A DNA stretch of 56,228 nucleotides from Octopus bimaculoides (GCF_001194135.2 NC_068994.1:5444724-5500951), one strand, 5' to 3'. Numbered from the stretch's first letter, positions 1,323 through 44,146 are shown. Numbers and translations are program-made. Notes: a model not told the origin generated them from the sequence alone.

Positions 1323-1466
1323 CTTTGCACTTATGGTGAAGAACAGACCAGTAATATCCTATCATGCAACCTTCCTCACAGCGTCCAGTGACTTCATCAC
1401 ATTTAGAACCTTCACAGTGTTCACAGCGTTCCATACACATATCTCCATAGAATCCAGGAGCACATT
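1323..1466 (-). CDS. EGF-like (laminin/MEGF10-type) exon of a lectin-EGF ectodomain
   Basis: Minus strand: acceptor ttattgcag|AA TGT GCT, donor AAA G|GTTAGA; 144 nt, phase 1-1; (Q)CAPGFYGDMCMERCEHCEGSKCDEVTGRCEEGCMIGYYWSVLHHKCK has MEGF10/CED-1-type Cys spacing and splices in frame from the 2494-2676 exon. Confidence 0.92.
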
Positions 1467-1675
1467 CTGCAATAACAAAAATGATAAAAAATGAAAATAT
1501 CACGGTTAGTGTATATATTTCACTAACGTTAGCATCTAATATTCAGTTGTAACGATATTTTATAGAATGAATATGGTTTAAATTTAATGATAATTTGTGG
1601 ATATCTTGATGTCACTGATAGATCAAATATTACATATAATTATATAAGATGATGACTATAAATTTACATCTGCGT

Positions 1676-1840
1676 TCATGCTGGAGAAAATGCTTAGTGA
1701 CATGTCATCCGTCTTTACGTTCTGCGTTCAAATTCCGGCGGAGCCGATTTTTACTTTTCGGGGTTGATAAGATAAGTACCAGTCAAGCAATCGGGTCGAT
1801 GTAATCGACTTGACTCCTCTCACCAAAATTTTAGGGCTTC
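1676..1840 (+). mobile_element. tRNA-derived SINE, family B (partial)
   Basis: aaatgcttag...gttcaaattccg...cggggttgataa...aagtaccag...gggtcgatgtaatcgact core shared with many copies in the window. Confidence 0.8.
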
Positions 1841-2493
1841 AAAGAAGAAATAAGGAGTAATCTTTTAGTGACCTCAAAAATGAACATAACCATGCAGAGG
1901 GCGAATATTTGAAAACACATCATCTTATCGAATCATGTAAAATGAAAGAAGATGAGTGAATGAAAGTTGGAGAGAGTGTAATGGTACATAGAATTGTATA
2001 TTTAGTTTATATAGTGAAATATTTGTTATATCAATCGTAATTAGCTTTATCAATGCTCCAATCAATACCAGTGGGAAGTTTTATGGTCAACAGAATGACT
2101 TTGCTCATTGGATATAGAGTTCTTGACTGTAGGTAAGCAGTATGCCAGTATATTTGACAAGTGTTTGCTTAACCTGTAACAGAGAATTGAAATCGTATCA
2201 CTAAAGCGTTACTATTTAGGAAAACCAGGGCGGAGGAGGGGCAAAGAGGTGGGGAAGCAGAAAGATTTCAAAACCGAACCAACTATCTAATGGTAATTAG
2301 TATGTTCATTTATGTTCGGAGTTCAAACCCCGCTCTATATATTTTACCTTTTAAACTTTCAGGATCGATTACAGTTATCAGTCAAGTATGGAAGTCAAGA
2401 TAATCGGTTGTACTTTATCTCAAAATCGATAGCTCTGTAACATTCTCATAAATCAATATTTACCAAGTGAAATAACAAATAAACATAACTTAC

Positions 2494-2676
2494 GTATTAC
2501 TTCCACTTCACATAGAGTAAGCATTTTATTCCATCCATCTAACGATATTTTGACATAACTTGAATTGAGTGGTTTTCTACATTTAATATGAATTACATCT
2601 TTATCGTATTCAGAATAGATACTTTGAAAACAAAGTGATGATCCAGCATAAACTTTAAATCCTTTCAGCCTGTCAC
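2494..2676 (-). CDS. C-terminal half of an F-type lectin / F5-8 type C (galactose-binding-like) domain exon
   Basis: Acceptor ttttggttctag|GT GAC AGG, donor ATA C|GTAAGT; 183 nt, phase 1-1; GDRLKGFKVYAGSSLCFQS...IKCRKPLNSSYVKISL...MLTLCEVEVI matches the FTP-domain end motifs (DRL.GF.VY, YV.I, LTLCEVEV). Confidence 0.9.
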
Positions 2677-2813
2677 CTAGAACCAAAATATAAGAGCAAA
2701 ANNNNNNNNNNAATCAGATGTTAGTTATATTGAGAATAATTTGAAAAGAAAGATCATCAAGCAAAGGGTTTACCTTTTTATAATTTGTCTCATTAAATAA
2801 TCGATAACACAAT

Positions 2814-3142
2814 ATGTACTGGAACTCCGTCGGTTACGGCTACGAGGGTTCCAGTTGAGTTGAGCAACGGAACAGCCTGCTCGTGAAATTATATTTCAAG
2901 TGGCTGAGTACTCCACAAACACCTGTACCCTTAACGTAGTTCTAAGGGAGATTCAGCGTGATGCAGGGTGTAATGAGGCTGGCCCTTTGAAATACGGATA
3001 CAAGTCATTCTTCCAGCTGAGTGGACGGGGGCAATGTGCAATAAAGTGTCTTGTTCAAGGACACAACCCGTCGCCGGGAATTGAACTCATGACTTTGTGA
3101 TCGTTAGACGAATACCCTAACCACTTAGCCACATGCCTTTTC
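2814..3142 (-). mobile_element. tRNA-derived SINE, family C, with 14-bp target-site duplication
   Basis: Pol III A/B-box head on the minus strand near 3060-3140; ATCGATAACACAAT at 2800-2813 and 3143-3156. Confidence 0.85.
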
Positions 3143-3192
3143 ATCGATAACACAATGAGTTGAAAAAAAATCAATAATTGAGATATTTTTTC

Positions 3193-3640
3193 AGGCATGT
3201 ATACAGGTGTGTGGTAAGAAGCTTGCTTCCCAACCACATGGCTCCTGGTTCAGTCACACTGCACAGCACCTTGGACAAGTGTCTTCTACTATAGCCTCGG
3301 GCCGACTTGGGCCTTGTGAGTGGATTTGGCAAACAGAACCTGAAAAGAAGCCCGTCGTATGCATGTATATATATGTGTGTGTGTGTGTGTGTCTGTGTCT
3401 GTGTGTCTTTGTNNNNNNNNNNGTGTGTGTGTGTGTGTCTGTGTCTGTGTGTCTTTGTTTATCCCCCCACTGTCGCTTGATGTTGGTGTGTTTATATCCC
3501 CGTAACTTAGCGGTTCGACAAAATTGACCGATAGAAGTACTAGGCTTAGAAAGAATAAGTCTAGGGGTCGATTTGTTCAAGCAAAGGCGTTGTTCCAGCA
3601 TGGCCTCAATCAAAATGATTGAAACAAGTAAAAGAATAAA
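3193..3640 (+). mobile_element. tRNA-derived SINE, family A, with internal (TG)n
   Basis: gtgtggtaag...ggttcagtc...cttctactatagcctcgggccg...gaaacaagtaaaagaataa; homologous to 30049, 52425 and 53478. Confidence 0.88.
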
Positions 3641-3897
3641 ATAATATATATGCTTATATGTATATTCGTGATGGGGTAGGCTCTGCACAGTTGGCGCTTT
3701 GTTTACGTATTTGCTTCATATTCATTTGTTCGGTTCTTTTTGTGGCTCTCTATATTTAACGTTGAAATGTATTCCTTTGTAAAAATCATATTAGTTATAC
3801 ACGTTTCTGTTAATTAGAAACTTTAGCAATGTCTCTAGGATCGTGAAGATAAAATGTAACGAACATCTTATTTTGAGGGTGGGTTGAAATGGTCATA

Positions 3898-4887
3898 GGA
3901 TGACTATGAAGGAGTGCTGTGAGAGCTGTCAAATATTGAATGCATTAATTTCAACACTGCTTATTAATAATAACTGTATTGTTTTTTTTTCCTCAGGTAA
4001 ACTGATATCTGACAGCTCAAAGAAGACCTCAAAAGTAGCTAGTAGCAACTGCATGTATGACGTCATCATCTCTGCAAGACTCGTTCCCAGACAGGATTTC
4101 TCATGACGAGGAACAGAGGATGATGAAATGGAGTCAAATCAGGGGAATAGGGAAGGTGCTTAACCAGTTCAAAGCCGTATTCATGCAGAGCAGCCATTGA
4201 AAACAAAGACTTGTCCGCTTGACGATTGTTCTGATGAAACAAAATAACTTTTGTCAGATTTCTTGAGCGCTTAGTCTTCATATATTTTTATATCTGCCTC
4301 AGCAACTTGGCATAGTACCCGCCATTGATGGGGCAGCCCCTTCAAAATAGTCAATAGATACAATACCTTTGCATCCTCAAAAACTGAAACCATCACCTTG
4401 CTGCAGGTGTAACGACCTAATCCATCTTTGAAGTAGAGGAGGTGGGGTGTTTCTACTCCATCTATTGTCTTTTTGACTCTGTCTCAAAGTGATAAACCCA
4501 ACACGTATCTCGGCTTAGGAAATTATTCAAGGAAACTAGCTGGACCTGCTCCAAACAATGTCAGATTTCCCCGTGATGTTATACGTCTGGTGCGCTTTTG
4601 ATCAGGTGTCATTAGACGTTGCACCCACCAAGCAGAAACATTCGTCATGACAAGTTCATGTTTAATGTGCAAAGTATTTTCATCTCNNNNNNNNNNNNNN
4701 NNNNNNNNNNNNAGTGTCAAATTTTGTCCATTTTCATGAGAATTCGCTTCTAGTAACATTTGAAGTCTTCTTTGAACAGTCAGATGTCAGTTTACTTGGA
4801 AGGAAACAGTACAGATATTAAGAAGTAGAGTTGAAACTTAATGCATGCAAGATTTCTCAGCTCTGCATCACTCCTTCATAGTCGTCC
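3898..4887 (-). mobile_element. Defective mariner element with long (~135-150 bp) TIRs, TA-flanked
   Basis: TA|GGATGACTATGAAGGAG... and ...CTCCTTCATAGTCGTCC|TA; broken transposase with WWVQRL (WVPR-like) and LPYSPDL motifs. Confidence 0.9.
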
Positions 4888-5321
4888 TAAGAATCTTTCA
4901 GCCCACCGTCGTATATCTAGAATATCTCCAGTGTAAAATTTCAATCTGAAAGCTAGTAGGAATTAAATTAAACAACATGAAACAGTTTGAAATTTTTGTC
5001 AATGTCATTTTCCTGTACCACGTAGAGAGAAGTGGATGTTCCTGTGTATTCATTCACACACATTCATACGTTACGATACACATTAATGATAGACAAGGCA
5101 AACAACTACAGATACAGACACAGAAATATATTTCCTTGTTTTCTATTAAATCTATCTATCTATCTATCTATCNNNNNNNNNNNNNNNNNNNNNNNNNNNN
5201 NNNNNNNNNNNNNNNNNNNNNNNNNNNNNNNNNNNNNNNNNNNNNNNNNNNNNNNNNNNNNNNNNNNNNNNNNNNNNNNNNNNNNNNNNNNNNNNNNNNN
5301 NNNNNNNNNNNNNNNNNNNNN

Positions 5322-5355
<34 letters not shown>

Positions 5356-5589
5356 AAACAAACACATACATACACATAGCACAAACACACACATACACAC
5401 ACGAACACACACACATATAACTGATTAATGAAACAGAAGAGGNNNNNNNNNNTACACACACGAACACACACACATATAACTGATTAATGAAACAGAAGAG
5501 GGATTTTGGGGTAATATTTATTTTCACTCCAGACTAATATTAAACGCATCTTCTGTTTCTTTTATCAATTATTATCTCTAACTAAGACT

Positions 5590-6162
5590 GCGGAATTCCT
5601 GAAGTAAATCCAACGGAAATATACCCCAATTGCGGATGACACCTGGTAGCCCAAAGTGTGGCAGTGCTTTACTCACCGCGTCAACACACTAATTAACAAA
5701 GCTGTCCATTACCCGACAGAGTTCCTTAATTCTCTTGTGACACCTGGAATTCCTCCACATAAAATTTTTCTGAAGGTAGGAATCCCAATAATGCTTCTAG
5801 GAAATTTAGATCCTCCTAAATTATGCAATGGGATAAGGTTGATTGTGAAGACATTATCACCTAAAGTGATAGAAGCTACCATCATCACTGGATGTGCCTC
5901 TGCGGAAGAGGTTTTCGTTCCAAGAATTTCAATCAAACCAACAGATATGCCCTTTGAATTCAAACGAACACAATTCCCAGTGCGACTTTCTTTTGCAATG
6001 TCTATTAATACAGCTGAAGTTTAGTCTTTGAAATCTACTGGCTTGATTTTCTCATGGTCAACTTTGTTTGGTTGCTCCAGGGTAAGTAGTTTGCAAGACT
6101 TATTTGTCTATGCTCCAAACCAGACAACAAGGAATGTTGTTTACCCAGAAGCGCTTACATAA
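5590..6162 (+). mobile_element. Helitron-type PIF1 helicase C-terminal fragment
   Basis: FLNSL...GIPPH.I.LKVG.PIMLL.NLDPPKLCNG.RL...QFPVRLSFAMSIN...SHGQL...NVVYPEALT*; contains stop and frameshift. Confidence 0.88.
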
Positions 6163-6765
6163 TTTCCTTCAACTAATGTGGTAGAATTTATTTCCCTTCA
6201 TTAAAGTGGTGAGTTTTGTATTTTCGTTTATTATTATTATTATTATTATTANNNNNNNNNNNNNNNNNNNNNNNNNNNNNNNNNNNNNNNNNNNNNNNNN
6301 NNNNNNNNNNNNNNNNNNNNNNNNNNNNNNNNNNNNNNNNNNNNNNNNNNNNNNNNNNNNNNNNNNNNNNNNNNNNNNNNNNNNNNNNNNNNNNNNNNNN
6401 NNNNNNNNNNNNNNNNNNNNNNNNNNNNNNNNNNNNNNNNNNNNNNNNNNNNNNNNNNNNNNNNNNNNNNNNNNNNNNNNNNNNNNNNNNNNNNNNNNNN
6501 NNNNNNNNNNNNNNNNNNNNNNNNNNNNNNNNNNNNNNNNNNNNNNNNNNNNNNNNNNNNNNNNNNNNNNNNNNNNNNNNNNNNNNNNNNNNNNNNNNNN
6601 NNNNNNNNNNNNNNNNNNNNNNNNNNNNNNNNNNNNNNNNNNNNNNNNNNNNNNNNNNNNNNNNNNNNNNNNNNNNNNNNNNNNNNNNNNNNNNNNNNNN
6701 NNNNNNNNNNNNNNNNNNNNNNNNNNNNNNNNNNNNNNATCTATCTTTCTGTTTGAATGGTGAAG

Positions 6766-6800
<35 letters not shown>

Positions 6801-7559
6801 TCCGATATGTTAGGAAAACTTTCNNNNNNNNNNNNNNNNNNNNNNNNNNNNNNNNNNNNNNNNNNNNNNNNNNNNNNNNNNNNNNNNNNNNNNNNNNNNN
6901 NNNNNNNNNNNNNNNNNNNNNNNNNNNNNNNNNNNNNNNNNNNNNNNNNNNNNNNGGATCAAAACAGTTTGATTCAAATTCGTTGGTACTCTTGAGTTTC
7001 AAGCACGATACTAGTCGTCAGCCATTTTGAATTTGAATGACAAATTGATCGTTATTACAGTGAGGTGGGATGCACTTGGTGTGATTTGATGTTGGTTTAT
7101 GGGTAACAGTTAGCTGGAAAATACCGCTCGGCGAACAGGAAATTGACCATGTGGAGGGCAGGAAATAGACTAGAAGTCGGTCAGGTNNNNNNNNNNGGAA
7201 ATTGACCATGTGGAGGGCAGGAAATAGACTAGAAGTCGGTCAGGTTGTTGGCGGGGAGTAGGAAATGGTGGCATGTGCAAGTCTATAGTTTTCCATGTGA
7301 GTGTGTAGATGCACTCATATAGTTTTGCGTTCATGTGTTTATTGGTGCGAGTGAGCGCATTTGTACATAGGCGCGCACGCACACTTCTGCACACACAAAC
7401 ACAAACACACGCACACGCNNNNNNNNNNNNNCACGCTTGGAGGAACATTCATGCGCGCGCACAGACACACAGAGGCTTGGACGAACGCGCACGCACACAC
7501 ACATACATACACACACATGCACATACGCACGCACCCACACACATGCAAATTGTTGCAAA

Positions 7560-7995
7560 TTGATGGTTTCGGTCTCAGATTCCTGGTTAACATTTCACTG
7601 TCGCCTACACAGGTGACTGTACATCTTTTTTTCCAGGTAATGTCCCAATACAAGTATTCTTGCGTCTCAAGAACCGGTTAGCGTCTGTTATTTTNNNNNN
7701 NNNNGAAGGTTGAATCCTAAATTTCGTTTTCACTCCATACTATGTCTCCTGGATACTGGTTTAAAATGATAGACCGAGGTCTCATTTCTTGTGACTATTC
7801 TCTCCAAAAAAGCTTCGACTTCGTCCTTATAGCGGTCGAATAAGCGTTGACAGATCTCCACACATTTNNNNNNNNNNCTTCGTCCTTATAGCGGTCGAAT
7901 AAGCGTTGACAGATCTCCACACATTTGGACCTATGCACTTCGGTAAGCTTTCTTGCCGCCCATCTGGCACGAACTTTACGGAAGGAAAGATTGTG
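7560..7995 (-). mobile_element. Mariner transposase remnant (second family)
   Basis: IIHHNLSFRKVRARWAARKLTEVHRSKCVEICQRLFDRY...FLERIVTRNETSVYHFKP resembles the WVPRxL and IVTGDETW regions. Confidence 0.8.
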
Positions 7996-8230
7996 GTGGA
8001 TTATTTGTATATACTTTTTGACTTACTTTTGTATTTTTTTTGTGTGTGTGTNNNNNNNNNNATTTGTATATACTTTTTGACTTACTTTTGTATTTTTTTT
8101 GTGTGTGTGTATGTGTGTGTGTGTTTGTGTGTGTGTGTATGTGCATGTGTGTGGTTGTGTGTGTAACATTACGAATTAAATGCGACTCTAATAATGTAAA
8201 CGTTCGCACGTACATACTTTATGTGTTATG

Positions 8231-8264
<34 letters not shown>

Positions 8265-8317
8265 NNNNNNNNNNNNNNNNNNNNNNNNNNNNNNNNNNNN
8301 NNNNNNNNNNNNNNNNN

Positions 8318-8349
<32 letters not shown>

Positions 8350-8359
<10 letters not shown>

Positions 8360-9412
8360 GTGAGAATTTACAAAAAGAAAAGACGAAGACAGGTATGTAA
8401 ACAACAAACAGATGTGTTAGCTTAACGCGCTGGAAGAGAGAAAGTCTTAAACATTTCGAGCCTACGCTCTTCGACAGAAAGGAATATAGAAATAAACAGG
8501 GAGAGAAAATAAAGAATGTTTGGTGGTTAGCGATCTATCATGGCGAATGCCGGACAGAGGGGGACAAGGGTGTGGGTGGGGGTTAGGCTGAGTGTGGAGT
8601 ATGTGGGAATGAGGTGTAATGGATAGGGTGGGGTNNNNNNNNNNNNNNNNNNNNNNNNNNNNNNNNNNNNNNNNNNNNNNNNNNNNNNNNNNNNNNNNNN
8701 NNNNNNNNNNNNNNNNNNNNNNNNNNNNNNNNNNNNNNNNNNNNNNNNNNNNNNNNNNNNNNNNNNNNNNNNNAGAGAGGGAGGGTAGGAGTGAAGAGAA
8801 ATAGGTGTCAGAGCAAGAGAGGCGAGGTGATTGAAGTAGAAGTGAGAGGAAGAGAGGAGAAGGGAGGAGAGTTGAGCTCATGTGGCGCAANNNNNNNNNN
8901 NNNNNNNNNNNNNNNNNNNNNNNNNNNNNNNNNNNNNNNNNNNNNNNNNNNNNNNNNNNNNNNNNNNNNNNNNNNNNNNNCCCCTGTACAAGGACAATCC
9001 GAACACAGACAAGTGTTGCAAAGAATGACCGGTAGAACGGAAATGGCGCGAGATCGAGATGTCATTTTCTAGTCGGATGTCTCGGAGGTGTTCCGCGAAC
9101 CGGTCAGCCAAGCGGCGTCCNNNNNNNNNNNNNNNNNNNNNNNNNNNNNNNNNNNNNNNNNNNNNNNNNNNNNNNNNNNNNNNNNNNNNNNNNNNNNNNN
9201 NNNNNNNNNNNNNNNNNNNNNNNNNNNNNNNNNNNNNNNNNNNNNNNNNNNNNNNNNNNGTCAGCGATATGATAGGGTGGATGATGGGTGCCTATGAGGA
9301 GGGTGGTGCTGGAGAGGTATGGGCAAGTTCGGCTTTGTGGGCGGGAGCAAAGGAACAAGCCGGGTTGGGAGGTTGCGTTAGGGAAGAAGCTGTGGGCCAA
9401 GAGGTATAACAC
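8350..9412 (-). mobile_element. Penelope-like retroelement 3' part (GIY-YIG endonuclease plus terminal repeat)
   Basis: PGLFLCSRPQSRTCPYLS...HIAD and ADRFAEHLRDIRL.ND..ISRHFRSTGH; gapped. Confidence 0.85.
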
Positions 9413-9584
9413 AGTATCAATAACAACGTAATTTTAATAGAAAGAAAACAATTCATCATTTAATTATGATTCAGTCATAAAAATACACACGGCATTCATT
9501 AAAATCCATAACGATCTAAAGTCAAGTAATGCAATGGAAATTAGAAGTGTTATAGATGGAAAATAATTTTTACATTATTCACAT

Positions 9585-10129
9585 TTGACGGCTATCTGTC
9601 CTCATCTTGTTTGTTGCTAACACAACTTTTCCGCGGATATATTCTCCAGCCTTTATCAGGTGTCCTGGAGAAATTTCGAACCTAAGTTCTCATTCCTAAG
9701 GTATTTTCCTGATGTTATTTTATTATTATAATCGAACTCGGAATCTTGGGCTTAGTAGACTGCGCCCTTAACCACTACGCCATATACCTGTAGGCAATGA
9801 TGGAGTGAATTTTGGGGCTTATAAATCTTATCTTTTCCTATCCTTCCTTAATACTGGTTCCCATGTGCTACTCATCTGCATTCGCTCTGCTTAGGAGGCT
9901 GTTGTGTCCTAACATATGTGCTGCTTCTTTTAGTTTTCGTATTTTCTAGTGGTATTCTCTATTATTTTAACTTCATTCCACAGGGGAAGATGATCTCCAT
10001 TTTTCCATATATGANNNNNNNNNNGCTATACCCGATTTATCAATATCTCCTCGGGTCTCAGCTTTGCGATGTTCCTCTAGGTTAAGAGCGCGGGCTACTA
10101 ACCCCAAGATTCCAAGTTCGATTCCAGAC

Positions 10130-10140
<11 letters not shown>
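9585..10140. mobile_element. Composite repeat: Penelope-type terminal repeat plus inverted pair of tRNA-like SINE heads
   Basis: 9730-9785 and 10075-10130 are reverse complements (ggttaagagcgcgggctactaaccccaagattccaagttcgatt), each next to an (ATT)n tract. Confidence 0.55.
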
Positions 10141-10174
<34 letters not shown>

Positions 10175-11655: not shown

Positions 11656-11735
11656 CTCACTGTTATCCAATGGGTGAAAAAACACAATATGCAACTAAAC
11701 GATGACAAGTCTTATAAAAATTCTGCTTGTCATTA
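11656..11735 (+). mobile_element. Small LINE RT fragment
   Basis: TVIQWVKKHNMQLNDDK resembles the post-YADD W...N.MQLN.DK segment of CR1/L2 RTs. Confidence 0.5.
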
Positions 11736-12099
11736 GGTTACTTAGCCCATCAGTAAAGAGAAAAGGAGGGAGAAAGTAAAGGAGAGAGAGAGAAAGGAGG
11801 GCGAGAGAAGCCGTCACGACATGAGGTTGGAGGAACATAATTGTAAAGCTTTCACGTGATTAGTTGAAGGGAAGAAAACGGTGAGAGAAAAGGAGGATGA
11901 GGCGAAGAGAGAGGCATAAAGAGGGAGAAAGAAAAAGAGGGAGAGAGAAAAAACAGAAAGAGAAGCGTCCAAGACATGTGGTAAGGGGAACGTAATATTT
12001 ATTACGTGATTAAGAAAAATAGTTGAAAGTATTTATATAGAGGAGAGTTAGGAATAAAATTTTAGCAGAGTGATGTTCTGTAGAGAAAGGCAGAGAGAA

Positions 12100-12140
<41 letters not shown>

Positions 12141-30211: not shown

Positions 30212-30273
<62 letters not shown>

Positions 30274-33664: not shown

Positions 33665-36600
33665 CAATGAAATTTTAATCATAGATATTGGACACAAATG
33701 AAGTAATATTTCTAAAATTTCAACTTCTTAGGAGGTTAGTAAGACCCTTTAATGGGGGCTTAACCCCAATAATTTAGTCATTTTTCCTGAACCAAGACGA
33801 ATACAGTTTGTAGTCTTGTATATACATACACACACACCACACATATAGTTATATATCTATATAGTTATATATTTATGAAAAGTTGATTCGGTTATATCTA
33901 CTAACATATATAAACAAGTTTATATATGATGATAGTCTGTTTTAGTCCAAGCAAGCTGAACAAGCGACTTATTTATACTGATTAAATGTATGTACTGTTC
34001 ATTAGCTCACATTCTCTGTGAAATCTACGCTACCTGAACAGGTGCGCGTTGTGCCACATGTCAGGTGTCAAAGTGATCGCAGAGTAATATCAATTGTTTT
34101 GGTCTAGAAAAAATACGCACCACCCAGTGCAAGAATTGAGCCCACGTTCTTCGGATCATGTGTACAACTAATTCATGCGCCTTCACAAGGGAATATACAG
34201 CAAGTATAAGATTTGTGGCTGAAATTCATGTAGAGTTTGTACTTGTTAGTATGAAACTTAAACTGCTTACCGAATTATTCACTGAATTCCATGCATTGAA
34301 TTAGCATTTTCACAATAAGATAGATCTCACTAACTTCACCTATTCACCTATATCATTAACTTTAAATATTCAATAATATTTAGTTTTAGCCTCATTAGAT
34401 ATTGTCGACCTTGCCTACTCTGATGTTACGTCGCTGAATTCATCTCAAACTAATAGTATTACAGTATAGTATACGCCCAATCCTTACACAGAAAGAACAA
34501 ATGTCATTGAAAAGAAATACATTGTAACATTCTCTCAATTAGAGTTCACGTGATCGTGTAACGTGGCTTTTGAAGTTTCATTGCTGGGCGGATTAAATGT
34601 GGATTTAAAACACAAGGGAATAAGTTCATAAATTCCATAGATACCTTGTTTTACGCATGCGTTTTATTTGTTTTACTAAAGTTCTCAACAAGATTATAAG
34701 CCCGGTGACAACAATATTGGCAAGATATCGCACCTCGGCGAAATAATTAAATTTTCGTTTTTATATTAAGCCTATTTCCAATGAAGCTTCAACTCTGAAC
34801 ATCTTTTGCAGATTGTTGGGGGTTTATTTATCTAGTTCTCTCTAAAGAACAAGATATGAATTAAATACTCGATCACACTAAAGGTTTAACGTGTTAAGTT
34901 TTGTAATATGCTTTATTATGTTCACGACTTTCTCTCTCTTCATATTGATATATTTAAACCGTTTCCTACAAATCTCTAATCTCAGGCTGTTTTTCCCTCA
35001 AATTGATCAAACTAACCCATAATTGTATTAATCTCACGCATTCTTCAATTTCATTCTTCAATTTCTAAAAGGTTATTCATGAAACGAAGGTTTCTTTCTT
35101 TTTCTTTACCAAACTAATGACTACGAAACACAATGTCTTTTATTCCAAAATTTATTGTTTGCTTAAACACTGTGTCTATGTGATTTTAAACTGATTCATC
35201 TTTGTTTTCAGATACAACTGGAGTTTATATATGATGTTTTAGTCGAGAACATTCTCACCGGAGATTATGACATAGATGTGAATAATATACCAAAGGAATT
35301 CTCTAGAATAACGGAAACANNNNNNNNNNNNNNNNNNNNNNNNNNNNNNNNNNNNNNNNNNNNNNNNNNNNNNNNNNNNNNNNNNNNNNNNNNNNNNNNN
35401 NNNNNNNNNNNNNNNNNNNNNNNNNNNNNNNNNNNNNNNNNNNNNNNNNNNNNNNNNNNNNNNNNNNNNNNNNNNNNNNNNNNNNNNNNNNNNNNNNNNN
35501 NNNNNNNNNNNNNNNNNNNNNNNNNNNNNNNNNNNNNNNNNNNNNNNNNNNNNNNNNNNNNNNNNNNNNNNNNNNNNNNNNNNNNNNNNNNNNNNNNNNN
35601 NNNNNNNNNNNNNNNNNNNNNNNNNNNNNNNNNNNNNNNNNNNNNNNNNNNNNNNNNNNNNNNNNNNNNNNNNNNNNNNNNNNNNNNNNNNNNNNNNNNN
35701 NNNNNNNNNNNNNNNNNNNNNNNNNNNNNNNNNNNNNNNNNNNNNNNNNNNNNNNNNNNNNNNNNNNNNNNNNNNNNNNNNNNNNNNNNNNNNNNNNNNN
35801 NNNNNNNNNNNNNNNNNNNNNNNNNNNNNNNNNNNNNNNNNNNNNNNNNNNNNNNATTTGATATTGGAGCATGAAATCTAAGTTTCACTACACTCAAATC
35901 CTTCAATTTTTTTAATTAACTAACATAGATATTCGAAAGTGATTTTTCCATTTGAATACACCACTGTTTAAATTGAATTCCACTTCAAATCCATGCATCG
36001 TCCATATCACTGCATGTCATATTTCAAGTAATGTAACCCCATTCGCATGTCATTTTTGTATGGAATGCACGTATGAATGAATGTTTCGTGAAGGAAAATA
36101 AGAATTGAAGAACTTCAGGCAGATACCTTTGCAAGTACTTCATATGATGAATCTGGCTAAGGGAATGAGCTTTGAAGAGTATAATAATCCGTGTCGGTTG
36201 GTTTTATCTTGTGACACATACAAACTGTTAATCCGAAGTCATTCTCCAAGGCGGTACATTAATCACAGGGAATAAAAGTTACCAGGAAAGAACGAGGAAT
36301 TATGATTTTATTTACTGACATACTTTTCGCAAAAATTGATTAACCGAACGTTGAGAATACAGTGGTTTGTACTTGCAATCGATCAGTTAAGTAATCAATT
36401 AATCATTTGAAAACTGGAACTGTAGTCTCGCAAACTTTCTCTCATCGGAGCTTAAAAGCGGTAACATTTTCCAAAGAAATGAACAAAGAAATTTGCAGCC
36501 ATGTAACACTAAAATTGTGGCCTTCAAACTCGGCAAACTTATATCCCATAGGCTTCAACATATGAAGCATCGTTGAAAAGGAGACTAATTGACATTCTCA

Positions 36601-39600
36601 CGATACCAGAGCTTCATTAAAGGCCAGCTTTGTCTAAGCTTTATCCGAAATGAATTAGGACGATTTTGGTGGTGACAGGTCAACTATTCCGGTCCTGCAT
36701 CGAAGCAGTAATCAGTGCTGAGAGGCAGATTCAGTAAATAATCATACGAGTAAGCTTTCGCGAGCATGCTATGTTTTATTTCGATCCCAGTTTGCATGTC
36801 GTAAAGGTGACAGAGATTCCAGCATGCTCCAGAACCGGACGACGATCTGTTTCAGAGTTCAAGCCTGTAATTTTAAGAAAGGGGCATGTCGATTACAACG
36901 ACCTGAATATATGACTGGCACTTTATTCTATCGCTCCTCCCTATCCAAGGGTCGAAAGGATAAATTGACCACAGTGGATTTGAACACACAGAACGAGCTG
37001 GAAGAAAGGCTGCCAAGCGTCTTAGCCGACATCTTAACGATTCATCCAAGTCACTGTGATGCTTTTTTTCTTTTTTGCTACATTATGTCCTGAAATAACT
37101 CCCCACCCCCACCCTCCATACACGACATCTATGGACTGGACTGGATAATTTCCAATCTTGTTTGTTTACTCAAACAAACTTGCACAGTATCACAAACGCA
37201 CGGGCGCATACGTCCGCCCACTCATCCATCCATCCAGTCATCCATCCAGCCAACCATCCAGCCATCCATTTTTACATACATACATACATACATACATACG
37301 TTATTATTATTGAGTGAGCGAGCAGCGCATGCCACATAACACTTATTAACACTTGGATTATAGTTGGGTTATGCAAATTATTCTTGAAGCATGAAATCTT
37401 GTCGGAAGCCCGTTCTTGTTGTTGGGAGGTAGACATTGTCTGTGGCCGTAATTAATACAGTTATTCATTATCCAGATTATAGAGGCAATAAGAGCCTATT
37501 CTTATTTAAGATATACACAAATTCGGAGAGAACTCGATTAGTTTGTTCTAATTTGTATAACAATGCATGTGCTTACAACGTGTATTAATAAGCATTAACC
37601 ACGGTTAGACAGTTATGTCAGGAAGAGCAAACCGAAAAGCTCATAAACACTGTCCTTCGACATCTAAATTAGCGACTAAATATAGAGTTTCAGATATATT
37701 TAGGACAGCAAAACAAAAAAAAAAAGCTTTATTCTTTTTCTCGCAGGAATGTCATAGATACAAACTTTCTATCATTTAAAAGTTACTAAGTATAATATAT
37801 GTGGATGCGTGTTTGTGTGTGGATGTGTGCGTGTGTGGATGTGTGTGTGTGCGCGTGTGTGTGTGTGCGCGTGTGTGTGTGTGCGCGTGTGTGTGTCTGT
37901 GTGTGTGAATATGCATTCTCCAGTATAAATATATCGCAACGATTGTTGTATAATTATTCAAATTAGTACTGTGAACTATAAGCAGTCTTAGGTTACTGTA
38001 ACGTAATAGCTTCGTTTATCTATTAATTTAACATTTTGCTTTTCTAGTAACTTGCAGGCCAGTCTAGATTTCGTTGTGTTTGTATAGAGTTAGATATTTT
38101 TTTTTAGGAAGGAAAATATATTGGTTTTGTTTATTAGACAATAATTTGTTAGATACTTAATCTAAAACGTTCAGTAATGTCACAAATAAATATCACAAAT
38201 GGATTATACATGTATAAACATATCTAAAATATCAGTATAACATGGAATAGTTTATGCACCAAGATCTTTCTCCAGTAACTTAATTAATGGGTTGTAACAT
38301 CATTACAATCTGTTTCTGTTTCACAATTAGTTGGGATCCAATATTTCCCACAAATTGTAAAGTAACAATAGAAAATAGACAGCGTTTAAGTACCCCCAAT
38401 TTAACAGATAGATCGGTCACCCATAACATCATTAATTTCAAAATATAACAACTTTTTAATATCGAAGTAATTTATTTCTTCAAACTAAAATAATTCCTAC
38501 ACTTTCTACTTACAGATCTCAACTTCAGATTTTATCATTTTGTTATATGAAGAGGATCAAATAAATATTTTCCACATTTCTGATTAAATAATATTTGATA
38601 ATTGTGCATACTGAGTCTTACTTTCTAATAACTTCCTGATAAAGCCTAATATATAGAGGATATACTTTATAACTGAATAGAAGTTTAGCAGGTTAAACGG
38701 TCAGCATGCTTATCTCTGTTCAGTTTCAAACTGGTTCTTTTAATGTGTAATTAACTCTAAAAGTGTATTTTATGGAATTGATTAATTAAGATATCTATCA
38801 TGCTCTGCGTTAATTTTCTAGAAAATAACTCTTTTTTTTTTTCATAAATGGAAGGAGAGTATGCGAATTTCAATATCAACGGGGTCTTCATTGATGTAAG
38901 TAAATTACTTTCGCACTTATTATCAATTTGCTTTAAAATCTTCTAGGTTTAGATCGGCATTTCCCTTTCTGATGTAGCCGCGAGCGGCTAATGATATCTT
39001 GACAGACCTCATACTCTGGAATGACACGGATATCACAGCTGGAGCGAGAGATCTGTACCTAATGCTCATTTTCAACTGGATTAAAATGGAACAACGCATG
39101 CTTTTTCGAAATCTACTTTCCAATGTTATAATTTGAGACGAAAGCAATTTCGAATGTAGTGCAGAACGGTTTTATCGTCCTGCCCGCACCTTGGGCATGC
39201 CGGCGGCACAGACATTCCATGCCCAGACAGTATATCGTGAACAAGTAAAGCATTCCTATAGCACTGCCAAGCCAGAGATTTCTGGTAATCTTGATAACAC
39301 AACCGAATCTTGAACTTTAATCCTAAAGTTCAACTACATCTAGTATGGTTAATATGAGAAGGATTAGAGTCCCGCTGCAGTTTGTGCTTTTTCTCAAGAT
39401 TTACGAGAAGGGATAAGGAGGCAAGAGCTCAGAAAAATCCAGGACATACACTTCTGCTGATGACTAAAATATAGAGGCGGCCTTGGAGAAATCCCTCGTA
39501 TTTCCAACTAACGCTGGAATAACGGAGTAACATGTTGACTTTAAATATAGTCCACATTGTTTAGCGTTCTGTGCAATACGAAAGAAAAATAAGAGTGAGT

Positions 39601-42600
39601 ACATTAATATATTTAAAGTATATTAAGGTTAATGTGCAACAGCTCCAGTAGAGGTTGGACGATTGTAAAGAGAATCGCAACGTCTTGCTTTGGAAGGTTA
39701 ACAGAACATACATGGGTCACCGTCGAGCGAACAAAAGATAAAACTTGGGAACAAATACGATCATCAGCCGATAATCAAGCGAAATATTCGTTGTTTGGTT
39801 TGCGTGTTTTAGTGTGTTGATGGCATGTTTTAAAGGTATGAAAAGGGCCAAATTTAATCAATTTGGTTTGCATATGTGAGTATATATATGTGAGTATATA
39901 TATATATATATGTATATATATGTGTATATATATATGTATATATATGTATATATATATATATGTGAGTATATATATGTTTGTATCTCTATGCGTGATGCAT
40001 GTGCGTGAGCAAGTGTGTGGGTATGCGAGTGTTTGTTAGTGTAAATGCCTCGTTACTGCTCAGATTTTAAGAAGATATTTCACTCTTACAAAAAATACTT
40101 CGTTGTAGTAAGACAAAACTTACGAATTAAGGCTATACCTGTATTTACTTTTCCTTGTCTGGTCTCCAGTTTTATAATTTTCTTCCTGTTTTTCTTTTAT
40201 GCATAGGGTCCTTCTTGCGAAAAAGAATTTCTTGTTACAAAATCTCCAAACGAAAACGATGCTCTGGAGTTTTTGAGGTGTATGCGCAAAAGAGGTTACC
40301 TAAATATCGTAGCATTTGATTCAAGCGAGGTAAAACTACAGATATTTTGTTTTCATACTAAAGTTGTCACTAACTATGTCATTGTTTCTAATTTATTGGT
40401 ATCCAAATTGTTATAACTCCAGTTATTTCTTCCAAGAGATGCTGTACATTTTGAAAGCTGAGAGATATATTGCTAATGCTAACTTAATATATAATATTAG
40501 GTAGAGATTTTCAGGTTGTTAGTCATCAGATTTTGTTGGCACCATTGTATGTGTTTCCACATTACTCTTCNNNNNNNNNNNNNNNNNNNNNNNNNNNNNN
40601 NNNNNNNNNNNNNNNNNNNNNNNNNNNNNNNNNNNNNNNNNNNNNNNNNNNNNNNNNNNNNNNNNNNNNNNNNNNNNNNNNNNNNNNNNNNNNNNNNNNN
40701 NNNNNNNNNNNNNNNNNNNNNNNNNNNNNNNNNNNNNNNNNNNNNNNNNNNNNNNNNNNNNNNNNNNNNNNNNNNNNNNNNNNNNNNNNNNNNNNNNNNN
40801 NNNNNNNNNNNNNNNNNNNNNNNNNNNNNNNNNNNNNNNNNNNNNNNNNNNNNNNNNNNNNNNNNNNNNNNNNNNNNNNNNNNNNNNNNNNNNNNNNNNN
40901 NNNNNNNNNNNNNNNNNNNNNNNNNNNNNNNNNNNNNNNNNNNNNNNNNNNNNNNNNNNNNNNNNNNNNNNNNNNNNNNNNNNNNNNNNNNNNNNNNNNN
41001 NNNNNNNNNNNNNNNNNNNNNNNNNNNNNNNNNNNNNNNNNNNNNNNNNNNNNNNNNNNNNNNNNNNNNNNNNNNNNNNNNNNNNNNNNNNNNNNNNNNN
41101 NNNNNNNNNNNNNNNNNNNNNNNNNNNNNNNNNNNNNNNNNNNNNNNNNNNNNNNNNNNNNNNNNNNNNNNNNNNNNNNNNNNNNNNNNNNNNNNNNNNN
41201 NNNNNNNNNNNNNNNNNNNNNNNNNNNNNNNNNNNNNNNNNNNNNNNNNNNNNNNNNNNNNNNNNNNNNNNNNNNNNNNNNNNNNNNNNNNNNNNNNNAA
41301 ACTGTTAAAATTGGGCCATATCTCCTGGAACTAATAAATGTTGAAGGAAAAGATGTTTGTATACATAGAGTTTTGAAGGTTGAGTGTGATATCAATGTAA
41401 GCTAATTTCATGTTTAAAATTATTCCACCTTTGAAAATGATATTATAGCTTAACGAATGCAATTCCTTATATTCCTGCATTGTAATATATTATTATATTT
41501 TGTTGGTTCATAATAACAACATAATTAAGGACTCTTGTTTCAGTAAGATGAAAAAATCTTCCCGTACGTGACCGTTTACTCTGACTTGTGAATGCAGCTA
41601 TCCAGTCCCTGAGAAAGGATCCGAAACCGGATGCTTTGAGAATAGACAGACGCCAAGTACGGATGGTCGTAGTTGATTAGGGACCCATTTGTGCCATGCT
41701 CATTGACAGCTCTCTCCCTCTATGATGTATCAGATGAGGTAGAAGTTGTCGTGGATTGCTCTGCTTGGGGTGGCACATGTCTGCATCTTACCAGTCCCTT
41801 CATCAACAACAAACCCCCACTTTTCTGCAAAAATCTACTTTGGCAAATAACTTACTGCGATCAAATCCATCCTATCTAGTAACTTTCAGTCACTCGCTAC
41901 TACTCGCTCGTGTCTGTGACTCGACTTTTATTTGAAAATCGTGAAAACCCAAAGAATTTCTTTCAATTTTTGTATTTCATTCACAATATTTTTTCATATT
42001 GCAGTCGAGGATCGAAGAATTTGAGATCAACCATTTCCAAGTCACCATATGGGCTGGCGGAAATTACCCATCATGCGCAGACATTTTACAACTAAGTTAT
42101 ATTCTCAGCGCTCATCAAAATGAGCAGTTCAATAAAAAAATTGCTGTGTATTGTAGGTAAGTGAAAATATTGATGAATTCACAAATTCACACTACATCCG
42201 TTGTGATCCCATTTGTAAACAATTTTTCTTTTTAACTATGTCTTCTAAGTTTTTTAATAAGTTTCCCTCTGATCCTGTTTTCTCTATTACTATCACTTTA
42301 CTAAACCTTATCGAACGTTATTTAATCACCCTTTGGGATGGCGAAAGAGTAGTTAGAGTGAGATCTAGGCACTTCCGAAACTCCAAAACACTACGCCTCC
42401 CAATAGCGTTAAACTTTGAGACTTGCACACCTAAAATGCATCAAAAATGGCTATAAAATCTTAAGGCATCTAAACTAAGGGGAAAATAACAGGGATATAT
42501 CCAAATTAATGGCTATGCTTCACAAAACGATTCTTTTCGTAGATACGTATCTGTTCAGATATTTTTTCTAACAGGGCTAAAAGGTGTTGAAATATATTGA

Positions 42601-42940
42601 TCGTAAGTTTTCTCTGTTCTAGTCTGTTGGTATGATTCACCGCTTCTTCTAAACGGTCTTCCTTTTTGTCGCACTCCTTTAAGGCAGTACGAACCACCTC
42701 AATTTCCGATACTATTACGTTGACGTCGTCCGTTTAAGCCGAGGCGAAACTAACATATCGTAGATTACGCGGAACGCCCCTCAAAACATACAACTTCAGC
42801 AGTAATGGCTCGAGAGTCAGTACGTATAGGAGAGGCGAGATTGGGCATCAATGACTATTTTGATAGGTGGCCATTTACTTTGGCCACAGAACAGGTGTCG
42901 TTGTACATAGCAGATATTCAGCATCTGAAAACAGGACTGA

Positions 42941-43003
<63 letters not shown>

Positions 43004-44146
43004 TAGTAATTTTTAGAAAATAAGAAACATCGTCTCAATTTTACTTATGTACAGTATAATAAAGAATGATTTTTGGTTTTTTTTTAACGGAACTTCTACA
43101 TACAATTTCAAACATATATCCTTGTCTCTGTATGTTACTGTGAAATCTTGTCAGAATCATATTACAATGTTAGAATCTATTATTCACATATTTTTAAACG
43201 TAAAACTTTTCTCATTCTTCTTTTATGTAAAGTAAAAATTTCCATAAAAGTGGTCTGCTGTGCATCATTCACATTTTGAAAGCTGCAATAACCAGTCAAT
43301 CAGTAATCAACATAGTTCGATTAGTTCGACTGATCAAAAAAATTGAACCAAGTATAGTACCTGACTGTGTAAGTATAGCAACATTTTTTCTCACTTTGTT
43401 TTATGTGCTTCAACCAAGTTTTTGCTAAATATCAGAAAGAAAAAAATCTGTCGTTAAATCTTTTTACTGTTATTTCAACACTTTTCTGAGAATAATTTTC
43501 ATGTTTTGTGATTATTGATGCACTAGTGATTATTTGGATAAGTTATCTTACACTGGAAATGTACGGACTGTGGGTGGTACATATGTGGGTAAATTTGATT
43601 AGCAAACTCCAGAATCGAAAGAACTGAAACATTTCCTTTGCTACCCTAGACATTTTTAAACGTATTATTTTCTTTCTACTTAAGACACAAGGCCTGGAAT
43701 TTTGGGGAGGAAGTTAATAGATTACATTGACCCCTGTGCGTAACTGGTACTTAATTCATCGACCCCGAAACGATGAAAGGCAACGTCGACCTTGGCGGAA
43801 TTTGAGCTCAAAGTGTTCACACGGATCAAATAACGCTAAGCATTTTGCCCGGCGTGCTAACGATTCTGCAAGCTCACCGCCTTAGTATATCTTCATATAA
43901 TAAATGCATCTGCGTAAATTAGTAACAAATGCTTATTTCGAAAGTGGTTTTTATTAGATGTGGAAGGAATTTATAATTCTAAGTAAAGGATACAGTAAAA
44001 TAAAATAATTGTGTATTAACTCATTTTAATTGATTTGATTGAAAAACTCATATTTATTTCTTTGACAGGAATCCTACGCCTTCATTTGGAAAATTGCTGA
44101 ATATTTACAGAACGAAACGTCTCTATACTCCAATTTTGTACAGTGA
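20059..44146 (+). CDS. Receptor-type protein tyrosine phosphatase, TM through stop (at least 17 exons; tandem D1 active / D2 pseudo domains); ectodomain absent from this strand
   Basis: Phase-consistent GT-AG exon chain giving TM, juxtamembrane, [49 protein letters not shown], then a degenerate D2 and a stop. Parts fall in N gaps. Confidence 0.95.
20797..21750 (+). mobile_element. Defective mariner, same family as 3898-4887 (5' TIR present, 3' TIR lost)
   Basis: gactatgaagga...gtaaagtgacatttgactgtacaaagaagacttcaaatg matches the TIR of the first copy; transposase remnants include [13 protein letters not shown] and LFHQDNAP. Confidence 0.88.
22009..22200. mobile_element. Mariner terminal fragment
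   Basis: gatgggtatgctaaaaagttcctgg resembles a mariner ITR, followed by ttcagtttttctaagtcctgtacaagaactcggaa subterminal sequence. Confidence 0.55.
22883..22977 (+). CDS. RPTP juxtamembrane exon 1 (basic stop-transfer)
   Basis: ttcattag|G AAA TTT...ACA G|GTAGGT; 95 nt, phase 2-1; [31 protein letters not shown]. Confidence 0.87.
23361..23488. repeat. Compound microsatellite (TCTA)n(TCCA)n(CT)n
   Basis: Read directly. Confidence 0.95.
23595..23734 (+). CDS. RPTP juxtamembrane exon 2 (YEET, YVNM, start of wedge region)
   Basis: ctttatag|CA CAT...TTC TTG|GTCAGT; 140 nt, phase 1-0; [46 protein letters not shown]. Confidence 0.9.
24510..24597 (+). CDS. PTP D1 exon (KNRY motif)
   Basis: ttcacag|AGA...CCT T|GTAAAT; 88 nt; [29 protein letters not shown]. 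Confidence 0.95.
25128..25665. mobile_element. Foldback/MITE-like element with ~175-bp inverted repeats
   Basis: 25128-25305 and 25497-25665 are reverse complements (aaaccaaggctgtgtagattttagaacatttataaata versus tatttataaatgttctaaaatctacacagctttggttt). Confidence 0.8.
26576..26649 (+). CDS. PTP D1 exon (DHSRV, DYINAN)
   Basis: tttcag|AC GAC CAT...ATC AGT|GTACGT; 74 nt, phase 1-0; (Y)[24 protein letters not shown]. Confidence 0.95.
27476..27500 (+). CDS. PTP D1 25-nt micro-exon (YIACQG)
   Basis: Long pyrimidine tract ctctcag|AAC CAG CGT TAT ATT GCT TGT CAA G|GTATGT; phase 0-1. Confidence 0.92.
27895..28125 (-). mobile_element. Degenerate SINE (family C-related)
   Basis: tgattcgtttatagtgatcaaa...caggtatcgaactgatctcagagcaac...actcaag; homologous to 33960-34180. 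Confidence 0.6.
28467..28564 (+). CDS. PTP D1 exon (FWRMVW, IVMLT)
   Basis: tttgaacag|GT CCT...GGA AAG|GTATGG; 98 nt; [32 protein letters not shown]. Confidence 0.97.
28688..28836 (-). mobile_element. 5'-truncated 3' end of the R4/Dong-like LINE, inside (TATG)n
   Basis: Homologous to 50155-50306; (TATG)n on both sides. Confidence 0.75.
29148..29315 (-). mobile_element. SINE family B
   Basis: ggcacaaggcc...tttatcgaccc...ggcaaagtcgac...aatttgaactcagaa. Confidence 0.8.
29509..29631 (+). CDS. PTP D1 exon (KCxQYWP)
   Basis: ttttggcag|ATT AAG TGT...TCT AAG|GTAAGG; 123 nt; [41 protein letters not shown]. Confidence 0.97.
30049..30490 (+). mobile_element. SINE family A, near full length
   Basis: aggcgtaggagtggctgtgtggtaagtagc...ggttccgggttcg...(TG)n...aaacaagtaaaagagtaaaagaata. 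Confidence 0.92.
30958..31115 (+). CDS. PTP D1 exon (WPD loop to VVHC)
   Basis: tatttacag|ACA GGT...CAT TGC AG|GTTTGT; 158 nt, phase 0-2; ...[13 protein letters not shown]...SSLVVHC. Confidence 0.97.
32542..32750 (+). mobile_element. SINE family B
   Basis: ggcggtgagctagcagga...gagttcaaattccgccg...gtcgataaaatacgtaccag. Confidence 0.85.
32903..33038 (+). CDS. PTP D1 exon ([11 protein letters not shown])
   Basis: gtctttcag|T GCT GGT...AAA AGG|GTGAGT; 136 nt, phase 2-0; completes [10 protein letters not shown]. Confidence 0.98.
33960..34180 (-). mobile_element. Degenerate SINE (family C-related)
   Basis: cattagctcac...gtgccacatgtcaggtg...gatcgcagag; homologous to 27895-28125. Confidence 0.6.
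35212..35319 (+). CDS. PTP D1 end / D1-D2 linker exon (3' end lost in gap 35320-35856)
   Basis: ttgttttcag|ATA CAA CTG...; [36 protein letters not shown]. Confidence 0.9.
36200..36740 (+). mobile_element. DD37D/maT-like transposase remnant
   Basis: [34 protein letters not shown] resembles WPPNSPDLNPLDY..WSIVE. Confidence 0.72.
36905..37040 (-). mobile_element. SINE family B (partial)
   Basis: actggcactttatt...gtcgaaaggataaa...ggatttgaacacacagaacg. Confidence 0.65.
38855..38895 (+). CDS. PTP D2 exon (INxxFID); 5' boundary uncertain (38855 or 38822)
   Basis: [13 protein letters not shown]|GTAAGT aligns to D1 DYINANFIS with the same phase-0 donor. The upstream acceptor gives a 74-nt exon containing an in-frame TAA. 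Confidence 0.75.
38930..39530 (-). mobile_element. L1/Tx1-type LINE 3' fragment (CCHC knuckle)
   Basis: [18 protein letters not shown]...[26 protein letters not shown]. Confidence 0.78.
40207..40329 (+). CDS. PTP D2 exon (degenerate YIxTQGP / FWRMV equivalent)
   Basis: tatgcatag|GGT CCT...AGC GAG|GTAAAA; 123 nt; [41 protein letters not shown]. Confidence 0.85.
41299..41378 (+). CDS. PTP D2 exon, 3' part (5' end in gap 40571-41298)
   Basis: [26 protein letters not shown]|GTTGAG parallels D1 FGSIEV...HRTF. Confidence 0.8.
41570..41880 (-). mobile_element. L1/Tx1-type RT fragment
   Basis: [20 protein letters not shown]...[12 protein letters not shown] resembles QTCA.PGRSIHDN...ALINLD...DH.YL. 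Confidence 0.72.
42005..42156 (+). CDS. PTP D2 exon (WPD replaced by WAG; ends IAVYC)
   Basis: ttcatattgcag|TCG AGG...TAT TGT AG|GTAAGT; 152 nt, phase 0-2; [50 protein letters not shown]. Confidence 0.88.
42640..42800 (-). mobile_element. L1/Tx1-type RT fragment (YADD region)
   Basis: [36 protein letters not shown]; the YADD motif is mutated. Confidence 0.55.
42947..43002. repeat. (AAT)n microsatellite
   Basis: Read directly. Confidence 0.95.
43233..43368 (+). CDS. PTP D2 exon (degenerate P-loop, SGLLC)
   Basis: ttttatgtaaag|T AAA...GAC TGT|GTAAGT; 136 nt, phase 2-0, identical in size and phase to the D1 counterpart; [46 protein letters not shown]. Confidence 0.9.
43685..43882 (-). mobile_element. 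SINE family B
   Basis: cacaaggcctggaattttgggg...taactggtactta...ggcggaatttga...ctaagcattttgcccggcgtgctaacgattctg. Confidence 0.88.
44069..44146 (+). CDS. RPTP terminal coding exon (YSNF tail, TGA)
   Basis: tctttgacag|GAA TCC TAC...GTA CAG TGA; [25 protein letters not shown]. Confidence 0.9.
   Translation, partial: ESYAFIWKIAEYLQNETSLYSNFVQ

Follow-up and report, generated by a model that had tools for sequence, protein, structure and literature searches.

Here, we describe a locus of Octopus bimaculoides that probably carries the two ends of one gene, a receptor protein tyrosine phosphatase (RPTP) of the molluscan type. The DNA analyzed, referred to as the window, is a stretch of 56,228 bases at about 5,444,724-5,500,951 on CM046614.1 (assembly GCA_001194135.2); it is AT-rich animal DNA and a gap scan counts 39 runs of N in it. 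With similar confidence, the encoded protein is predicted to be composed of an N-terminal region that was not recovered, an EGF domain, an F-type lectin domain (FTP), an array of MEGF-type EGF repeats, one transmembrane (TM) segment, a competent phosphatase domain (D1) and a second phosphatase domain that is dead but conserved (D2). A preliminary description of this DNA had drawn these parts as a collinear unit that runs from 1323 to 44146. We confirm its exons and domains as well as its assignment to the family, but the collinear unit has to be given up, because the ectodomain exons are found on the other strand, beyond a probable scaffold join. A misoriented scaffold in a draft assembly upgraded with Hi-C data is the most likely cause of the opposite strands. 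The gene is an uncharacterised member of a receptor kind that is already known, since its architecture has been predicted in public octopus annotations and published for snails, and it sits in a badly assembled locus.

The cytoplasmic half is encoded on the plus strand. Its exons were identified by tblastn with octopus relatives and by splice-aware reconstruction guided by the Octopus vulgaris protein CAI9733298.1 (P0276). Every visible exon junction on this strand is GT-AG and the frame is continuous. The spliced translation has the features of a classical receptor protein tyrosine phosphatase (PTP), that is a single TM helix followed by a D1 domain with KNRY motif, WPD loop, HC(X)5R loop and Q-loop. 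Pfam reports Y_phosphatase in two stretches (E value 1.4e-91), and the second of these is a membrane-distal domain of the PTP fold, D2, that stays open up to the stop codon. The TM, D1 and D2 exons of the preliminary description are thereby borne out, and the end coordinate given there, 44146, is exactly the last base of the TGA stop. Judged from its motifs, D1 should be active because the full set is present. D2 should be inactive because the catalytic arginine and the WPD loop are lost; WAGGNYP stands in place of the latter and the P-loop arginine is replaced by lysine. The best non-cephalopod matches of D1 and D2 are RPTP alpha and epsilon, with 35-43% identity. The TM exon starts in phase 1 and an upstream coding exon is therefore required; it has no start codon context of its own, and the EGF1 exon described below also ends in phase 1.

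Two gaps damage this half of the gene. The gap at 35320-35855 interrupts the last D1 exon and hides its end together with a 15-codon linker exon, and the gap at 40571-41298 has taken the 5' part of the D2 exon that resumes at 41299. An in-frame stop in the small linker exon between D1 and D2 was considered and rejected, since the TAA in question (38845-38847) proved to be intronic; the O. vulgaris sequence is identical there. The model of a paralogue, P0003, reads into the intron at this place. In O. vulgaris, the isoform P0128 shifts frame within the linker exon and stops behind D1, a hint at an isoform with D1 only.

The ectodomain exons that could be recovered are encoded on the minus strand. 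The FTP-C exon codes for the C-terminal half of the lectin domain; it is 75% identical to O. vulgaris P0128/P0276 (tblastn E value 1.4e-23) and in a search of the PDB it matches the solved F-type lectin FBP32 (3cqo) with an E value of 2e-6. The EGF1 exon is 73% identical to P0128 (tblastn E value 3e-17) and is the only match to an EGF pattern in the six frames of the window. Both exons translate on the minus strand only, the plus strand frames being closed at these positions. EGF0, the EGF exon ahead of the lectin domain, survives as a 5' fragment in which eight of nine residues are identical to O. sinensis P0129 and O. bimaculoides P0127, a match that is weak alone (tblastn E value 0.37), and the remainder of EGF0 is lost in the gap at 13801-14143. 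Thus, the lectin and EGF exons of the preliminary description are real, as splice sites and homology testify, but they are encoded on the minus strand, and the window lacks the EGF array. The start coordinate 1323 shares this fate: it is an exact 3' splice boundary of the EGF1 exon, on the opposite strand. With the ectodomain exons on the minus strand and the TM and PTP exons on the plus strand, the assembled window does not allow them to be spliced together.

Exhaustive tblastn and pattern searches detected no further EGF or FTP exon on either strand of the window. Pfam gave no match to the FTP half-exon alone or to the EGF exon alone, and none to the six-frame open reading frame (ORF) pieces of 1-20200 packed as pseudo-proteins, a scan that also missed the known transposon pieces. 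Two cysteine-rich plus strand ORFs (14320-14457 and 19139-19303) were examined as EGF exons and dismissed, as they have neither an EGF-type Pfam match nor a counterpart in orthologues; the latter ORF gives only two sub-threshold matches to unrelated Pfam families and its sequence is intronic in O. vulgaris. Many further matches to EGF-like patterns turned out to be (TG)n microsatellites. Repeats of this type occupy 18088-18304, 30151-30353, 37758-37963 and 49434-51265, and their Cys-Val translations mimic cysteine-rich or EGF-like ORFs.

What connects the two halves is the comparison with other octopuses. The orthologous O. vulgaris locus (OX597827.1, termed L006 here) comprises 107.9 kb with only 200 N and has all exons on one strand, with FTP-N at about 10000, FTP-C at 23041, EGF1 at 24152, twelve more EGF exons at 28472-61207, the TM exon at about 64800 and the PTP exons up to 97904. 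In blastn alignments, window positions 1-11128 match L006 25599-9671 in reversed but collinear order, including intron sequence, and positions 16758-49276 match L006 62267-107907 in forward order, each with 85-90% identity. The roughly 37 kb between these matches (L006 25599-62267), which hold the EGF array, have no counterpart in the window. In the gap-free O. sinensis locus (L005), the EGF exons and the TM exon share one strand. Hence the ectodomain and cytoplasmic parts, on opposite strands in the window, share a strand in both O. vulgaris and O. sinensis. Homology to L005 (from 8207) and to L006 (from 62267) begins at the same window base, 16758, which is the first base after a gap of exactly 100 N, the only one of this length among the 39. 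At synonymous sites, FTP-C plus EGF1 diverge from O. vulgaris by 0.155 and D1 by 0.160 (synonymous divergence, dS). Equal dS in both blocks indicates two halves of the same orthologous gene, and hence the ectodomain block is no stray paralogue.

The proposed course of events is simple. The ectodomain block (1 to about 16657) would be inverted relative to the TM-PTP block (16758 onward), because an original scaffold with the 5' half of the gene would have been placed in the wrong orientation during Hi-C scaffolding. The EGF array that belongs between EGF1 and the TM exon would then lie to the left of the window, on the minus strand. The 47 bases that directly precede the 100-N gap (16611-16657) are a repeat of 15823-15869, located 0.8 kb upstream, with 87% identity, so that the left block terminates in a repeat. 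The chromosome assembly combines the 2015 shotgun assembly with Hi-C data (PMC9068888); the main text of that paper does not name the scaffolder.

The comparison also clarifies the gaps. The N-terminal half of the lectin domain, which the preliminary description wished to recover, does not lie in the gap at 2702-2711. This gap lies within one collinear alignment (window 1694-3178 to L006 24026-22567); it is intronic, its distance to the FTP-C acceptor downstream is 25 nucleotides, and no exon is hidden in it. The gaps at 3413-3422, 4687-4712, 5173-5321, 5443-5452 and 6252-6738 map to the long FTP-N/FTP-C intron of O. vulgaris, and none of these six gaps (2702-2711 through 6252-6738) cuts a coding exon. 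By collinearity, the FTP-N exon is expected in the gap at 10175-10986, because the O. vulgaris exon (L006 9917/10001-10177) sits between the alignments that flank this gap (window 9405-10173 to L006 11643-10886 and window 10987-11128 to L006 9814-9671).

Table 1. Exons and structurally relevant gaps of the receptor phosphatase locus, in window coordinates.
Feature	Position	Strand	Remarks
EGF1 exon, 8-Cys MEGF-type EGF	1323-1466	-	144 nt, phase 1-1, canonical splice sites; CAPGFYGDMCMERCEHCEGSKCDEVTGRCEEGCMIGYYWSVLHHKCK
FTP-C exon, F-type lectin C-terminal half	2494-2676	-	AG acceptor, GT donor, phase 1; ..DRLKGFKVYAGSSLCF...LTLCEVEVI
Gap, 812 N	10175-10986		FTP N-half exon expected here, on minus strand
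EGF0, 5' fragment (EGF preceding the lectin domain)	14144-14168	-	canonical AG acceptor, phase 1; G-CPPQLYGK
Gap, exactly 100 N	16658-16757		synteny break against O. vulgaris and O. sinensis; probable Hi-C scaffold join
TM exon	20059-20152	+	single TM helix; phase 1 at 5' end
Juxtamembrane exon 1	22883-22977	+	spliced reconstruction
Juxtamembrane exon 2	23595-23734	+	spliced reconstruction; ...PFNDEFL
PTP D1, eight exons	24510-24597, 26576-26649, 27476-27500, 28467-28564, 29509-29631, 30958-31115, 32903-33038, 35212-35319	+	100% match to P0001
Small D1-D2 linker exon	38855-38895	+	spliced reconstruction
PTP D2, five exons	40207-40329, 41299-41396, 42005-42156, 43233-43368, 44069-44146	+	TGA stop 44144-44146

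The existing gene models reflect the state of the assembly. The NCBI model P0001 ('receptor-type tyrosine-protein phosphatase alpha [Octopus bimaculoides]', 368 amino acids) matches the window exon by exon with 100% identity and is truncated because the gaps at 35320-35855 and 40571-41298 cut coding sequence. At its end it reads into the intron past 40329 (40330-40413), since the start of the next exon falls in a gap. An older model with two exons, P0121, consists of exactly the FTP-C exon and the EGF1 exon.

Some points speak against a single gene that was merely broken by scaffolding. P0001 covers D1 only and has neither ectodomain nor TM segment, and the FTP N-half with its histidine and first arginine is unread, being expected inside a gap. 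The reading of the 100-N gap as a Hi-C join relies on the habit of common scaffolders. A real, species-specific inversion that splits the gene would give the same picture. Such an inversion in O. bimaculoides would have separated a minus strand FTP/EGF fragment, possibly secreted or else a relic in decay, from a plus strand TM-PTP remnant without ectodomain, which would be an RPTP with a short ectodomain and a new first exon, or a young pseudogene. The opposite strands in the deposited assembly, the separate models for the parts (D1 only in P0001, FTP-C and EGF1 only in P0121) and an ectodomain ratio of nonsynonymous to synonymous substitution rates (dN/dS) of about 1, compatible with relaxed constraint, all fit this scenario. 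We nevertheless consider it unlikely. Its breakpoint would coincide exactly with the 100-N gap of a Hi-C-scaffolded draft, and open frames and splice sites are kept in all visible exons on both sides of it. The TM exon begins in phase 1 without a start codon context, selection on D1 and D2 is purifying (dN/dS about 0.25), and O. vulgaris and O. sinensis are collinear.

A considerably less probable reading assigns the minus strand FTP/EGF exons to another paralogue, arranged head to head and with its TM-PTP part to the left of the window, the ectodomain of the plus strand gene being lost in gaps. The family is indeed tandemly duplicated, the TM exon of the paralogue P0003 lying about 93 kb downstream of the TM exon in the window, and there are many gaps within 2712-16657. 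However, window 1-11128, introns included, and 16758-49276 match the 5' and 3' parts of the same O. vulgaris gene, DNA identity (87-90%) and dS are alike in both parts, and no second FTP/EGF block is found in the window. A single collinear plus strand gene from 1323 to 44146, taken literally, has practically no probability left. Both coordinates are true boundaries, of an exon and of the stop codon respectively, but the strand refutes it, as the FTP and EGF exons translate on the minus strand only, and their coordinate order would yield the wrong order of domains in the protein. The misoriented scaffold thus remains our preferred explanation.

The lectin domain was assessed with the help of the O. 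vulgaris orthologue. Its full domain passes PF22633 (48.8 bits, cutoff 27.8) and matches solved F-type lectins, namely FBP32 (3cqo, 1.3e-24) as well as Sm-hPAF, the eel agglutinin AAA (1k12) and pneumococcal SpX-1. When aligned to FBP32, the histidine and both arginines of the fucose site (motif H..R.D....R) are conserved and the aspartate is exchanged for lysine. In the window only the last arginine of the sugar site (DRLKG) is readable. Fucose binding is plausible from this alignment. The octopus domain probably shares the fold of Anguilla agglutinin (1k12) and striped bass FBP32 (3cqo), and it has their C-terminal LTLCEVEV strand. In contrast to these soluble proteins, the lectin in octopus is one module of a receptor.

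The complete architecture is found in single models elsewhere. O. vulgaris CAI9733298.1 (P0276, 1022 amino acids) combines FTP, six EGF repeats, TM, D1 and D2 in a single model, all on the same strand, and Pfam recognizes F5_F8_type_C_2, F5_F8_type_C and two Y_phosphatase stretches in it. It derives, together with CAI9733299.1 (P0128), from the orthologous locus with collinear introns; both carry the name 'receptor-type tyrosine-protein phosphatase T-like isoform X8'. Amino acid identity to the window is 76% for the ectodomain exons, 92% for D1 and 89% for D2. The O. vulgaris gene spans 88 kb on one strand with 13 EGF cassette exons, whereas the window holds EGF1 and a scrap of EGF0 only, on the opposite strand; the O. 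vulgaris model has no signal peptide and no EGF0 exon. The O. bimaculoides paralogue XP_052834032.1 (P0127) unites EGF-FTP-EGF-EGF-TM-D1 in one model. The locus belongs to a family with the order EGF, FTP, EGF array, TM, active PTP and pseudo-PTP, as anticipated; P0276 shows this order from FTP onward, and P0127 shows EGF-FTP-EGF-EGF-TM-PTP. The transcript contig L001 (SRR8281685) encodes a signal peptide, EGF repeats, TM, D1 and D2 in one ORF of 954 amino acids. Between its EGF repeats, at about 260-440 where the lectin domain would be, lies a stretch rich in cysteine and tryptophan that looks kringle-like by eye.

The family extends well beyond this locus. When the peptide of the two exons FTP-C and EGF1 was compared with 1.8 billion cluster representatives, 618 matches were obtained. 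Among the 150 best of these, 27 have a PTP loop, most of them with a TM-like hydrophobic run before it, and the relatives with a PTP loop come from Haliotis, Crassostrea, Dreissena, Solemya, Physella, Bulinus and a chiton. The tandem paralogue P0003 has the same orientation as the plus strand exons of the window, and further O. bimaculoides loci of the family are represented by P0127, P0130 and P0151. Judged from these sequences, this is an expanded family with members across molluscs, in agreement with the lineage-expanded molluscan family postulated beforehand. We found neither TM-PTP exons joined to an ectodomain of another type nor a single-copy, conserved orthologue of a known RPTP, the two outcomes that the preliminary description had named as fatal to its proposal. 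The cluster representatives contain no O. bimaculoides protein that covers the EGF array, and a search for the 352-amino-acid upstream model of the paralogue locus L003 was without result. In O. vulgaris, a gene with a weak Y_phosphatase match lies head to head with the orthologue, about 5.7 kb upstream of it (L006 1-4296, minus strand); it has no tblastn similarity to P0276 at E < 1e-3.

The closest described system is that of the snail Biomphalaria sudanica, where the schistosome-resistance region SudRes1 contains genes for 'MEGF/GBD-containing RPTP' of the same layout (Nat Commun 2025, PMC12297450). The link to Biomphalaria drawn in the preliminary description is thus correct. These are single-pass proteins with MEGF repeats and a galactose-binding-like domain outside and tandem PTP domains inside the cell, and they occur as clustered paralogues with a variable ectodomain. 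P0276 and P0127 have this layout of MEGF repeats, galactose-binding-like domain, TM and tandem PTP, and the window holds all its module types, distributed over two strands. Relatives in layout occur in the hygrophilan snails Physella and Bulinus; a kinship to the Biomphalaria genes is putative, judged from the architecture and from these matches. Unlike the SudRes1 genes, the octopus gene is a cephalopod member with no known association with disease or parasites, and its galactose-binding-like domain specifically is predicted to have the F-type lectin fold.

Vertebrate receptors resemble the octopus protein in parts only. The R4 RPTPs (PTPRA, PTPRE) also have tandem D1 and D2 domains behind a single TM segment. 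Their ectodomains are short and glycosylated and contain neither EGF nor lectin domains, and their D2 retains the Cys-X5-Arg loop, whereas the octopus D2 has lysine for arginine and has lost the WPD loop. In the established classification, no vertebrate RPTP subtype is known to have a lectin and EGF ectodomain of this type. With MEGF10, Draper and CED-1 the octopus gene shares the 8-Cys MEGF-type EGF repeat, and several members of the family carry the NCBI names 'MEGF10' or 'draper'. The tail of those receptors is of the NPxY/ITAM type (NPxY / YxxL), while the octopus tail consists of juxtamembrane region, D1 and D2, and Pfam scans of P0276, P0127 and P0129 gave no match to an EMI domain. The sequences thus place the gene outside the MEGF10/Draper/CED-1 group, and of the connection suggested earlier the EGF repeat type stands and nothing else.

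The two halves of the gene differ in their rate of evolution. Compared with O. vulgaris, with dS at about 0.15-0.20 throughout, dN/dS is 0.97 for the ectodomain exons FTP-C and EGF1 (107 codons), 0.52 for the TM and juxtamembrane exons (105 codons), 0.24 for D1 (267 codons) and 0.25 for D2 (207 codons). A fast-evolving ectodomain is therefore supported, and the prediction that it outpaces D1 holds. Because the ectodomain sample is small, positive selection is not demonstrated. D2 is under purifying selection although it is predicted to be dead. Together with the tandem copy P0003, these values describe a cluster of paralogues whose ectodomain diverges. In O. vulgaris, L006 24152-61207 contains 13 intact, symmetrical phase-1 EGF cassette exons that alternate between 129 and 135 nucleotides, an array that apparently arose when a two-exon unit was duplicated again and again. 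Only six of the 13 are used in the deposited model of 1022 amino acids, and thus alternative splicing of the ectodomain is possible.

The function of the receptor can be sketched only in outline. It would be a type-I receptor that uses its lectin domain and its EGF array to bind a glycan, fucosylated or other, or a protein ligand carried by microbes or by neighbouring cells. Clustering driven by the ligand, or segregation and exclusion, might change the access of D1 to its phosphotyrosine substrates, and D2 might serve as a regulatory or docking pseudo-phosphatase. A role in immunity or glycan sensing is what we infer from this arrangement. It is rather doubtful, though conceivable, that the choice of EGF cassettes and the fast lectin/EGF ectodomain together yield diversified glycan-sensing phosphatase receptors of cephalopods, acting in immune or cell-cell recognition.

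If the gene is intact, octopus possesses a receptor class that vertebrates lack, in which a lectin/EGF ectodomain is wired to a tyrosine phosphatase, and in snails this class has a reported link to resistance against schistosomes. Because innate immunity and cell recognition of cephalopods are poorly understood, this fast-evolving and tandemly duplicated family is a reasonable candidate for studies on haemocytes. At the same time, the O. bimaculoides reference probably misrepresents the locus, in that one block is inverted, the EGF array is absent and the models are truncated. Counts of the family, or scans for selection, that use this assembly will then be wrong here.

The remaining sequence of the window contains debris of mobile elements. 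Remnants of mariner-type transposases lie at 21319-21603 (plus strand), 3875-5172 and 47648-48350. The first is located in the intron between the TM exon and juxtamembrane exon 1 (Pfam Transposase_1, E value 8.8e-10). The O. vulgaris match of the second is opposite in orientation to its surroundings, probably owing to a transposon whose ends are inverted. Fragments of a Pif1-like helicase at 5650-6021 and 12251-12454 (both plus strand; Pfam Pif1_2B_dom, E value 1.7e-15), reported inside the intron between the N- and C-terminal halves of the lectin domain, are most likely Helitron debris. A short interspersed repeat is present on both strands, at 18793-18995, 29137-29303, 32521-32755, 43664-43903, 46320-46584 and 51836-52281; it produces a recurring pseudo-ORF with no Pfam match, and the O. 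vulgaris locus, too, contains many copies of it.

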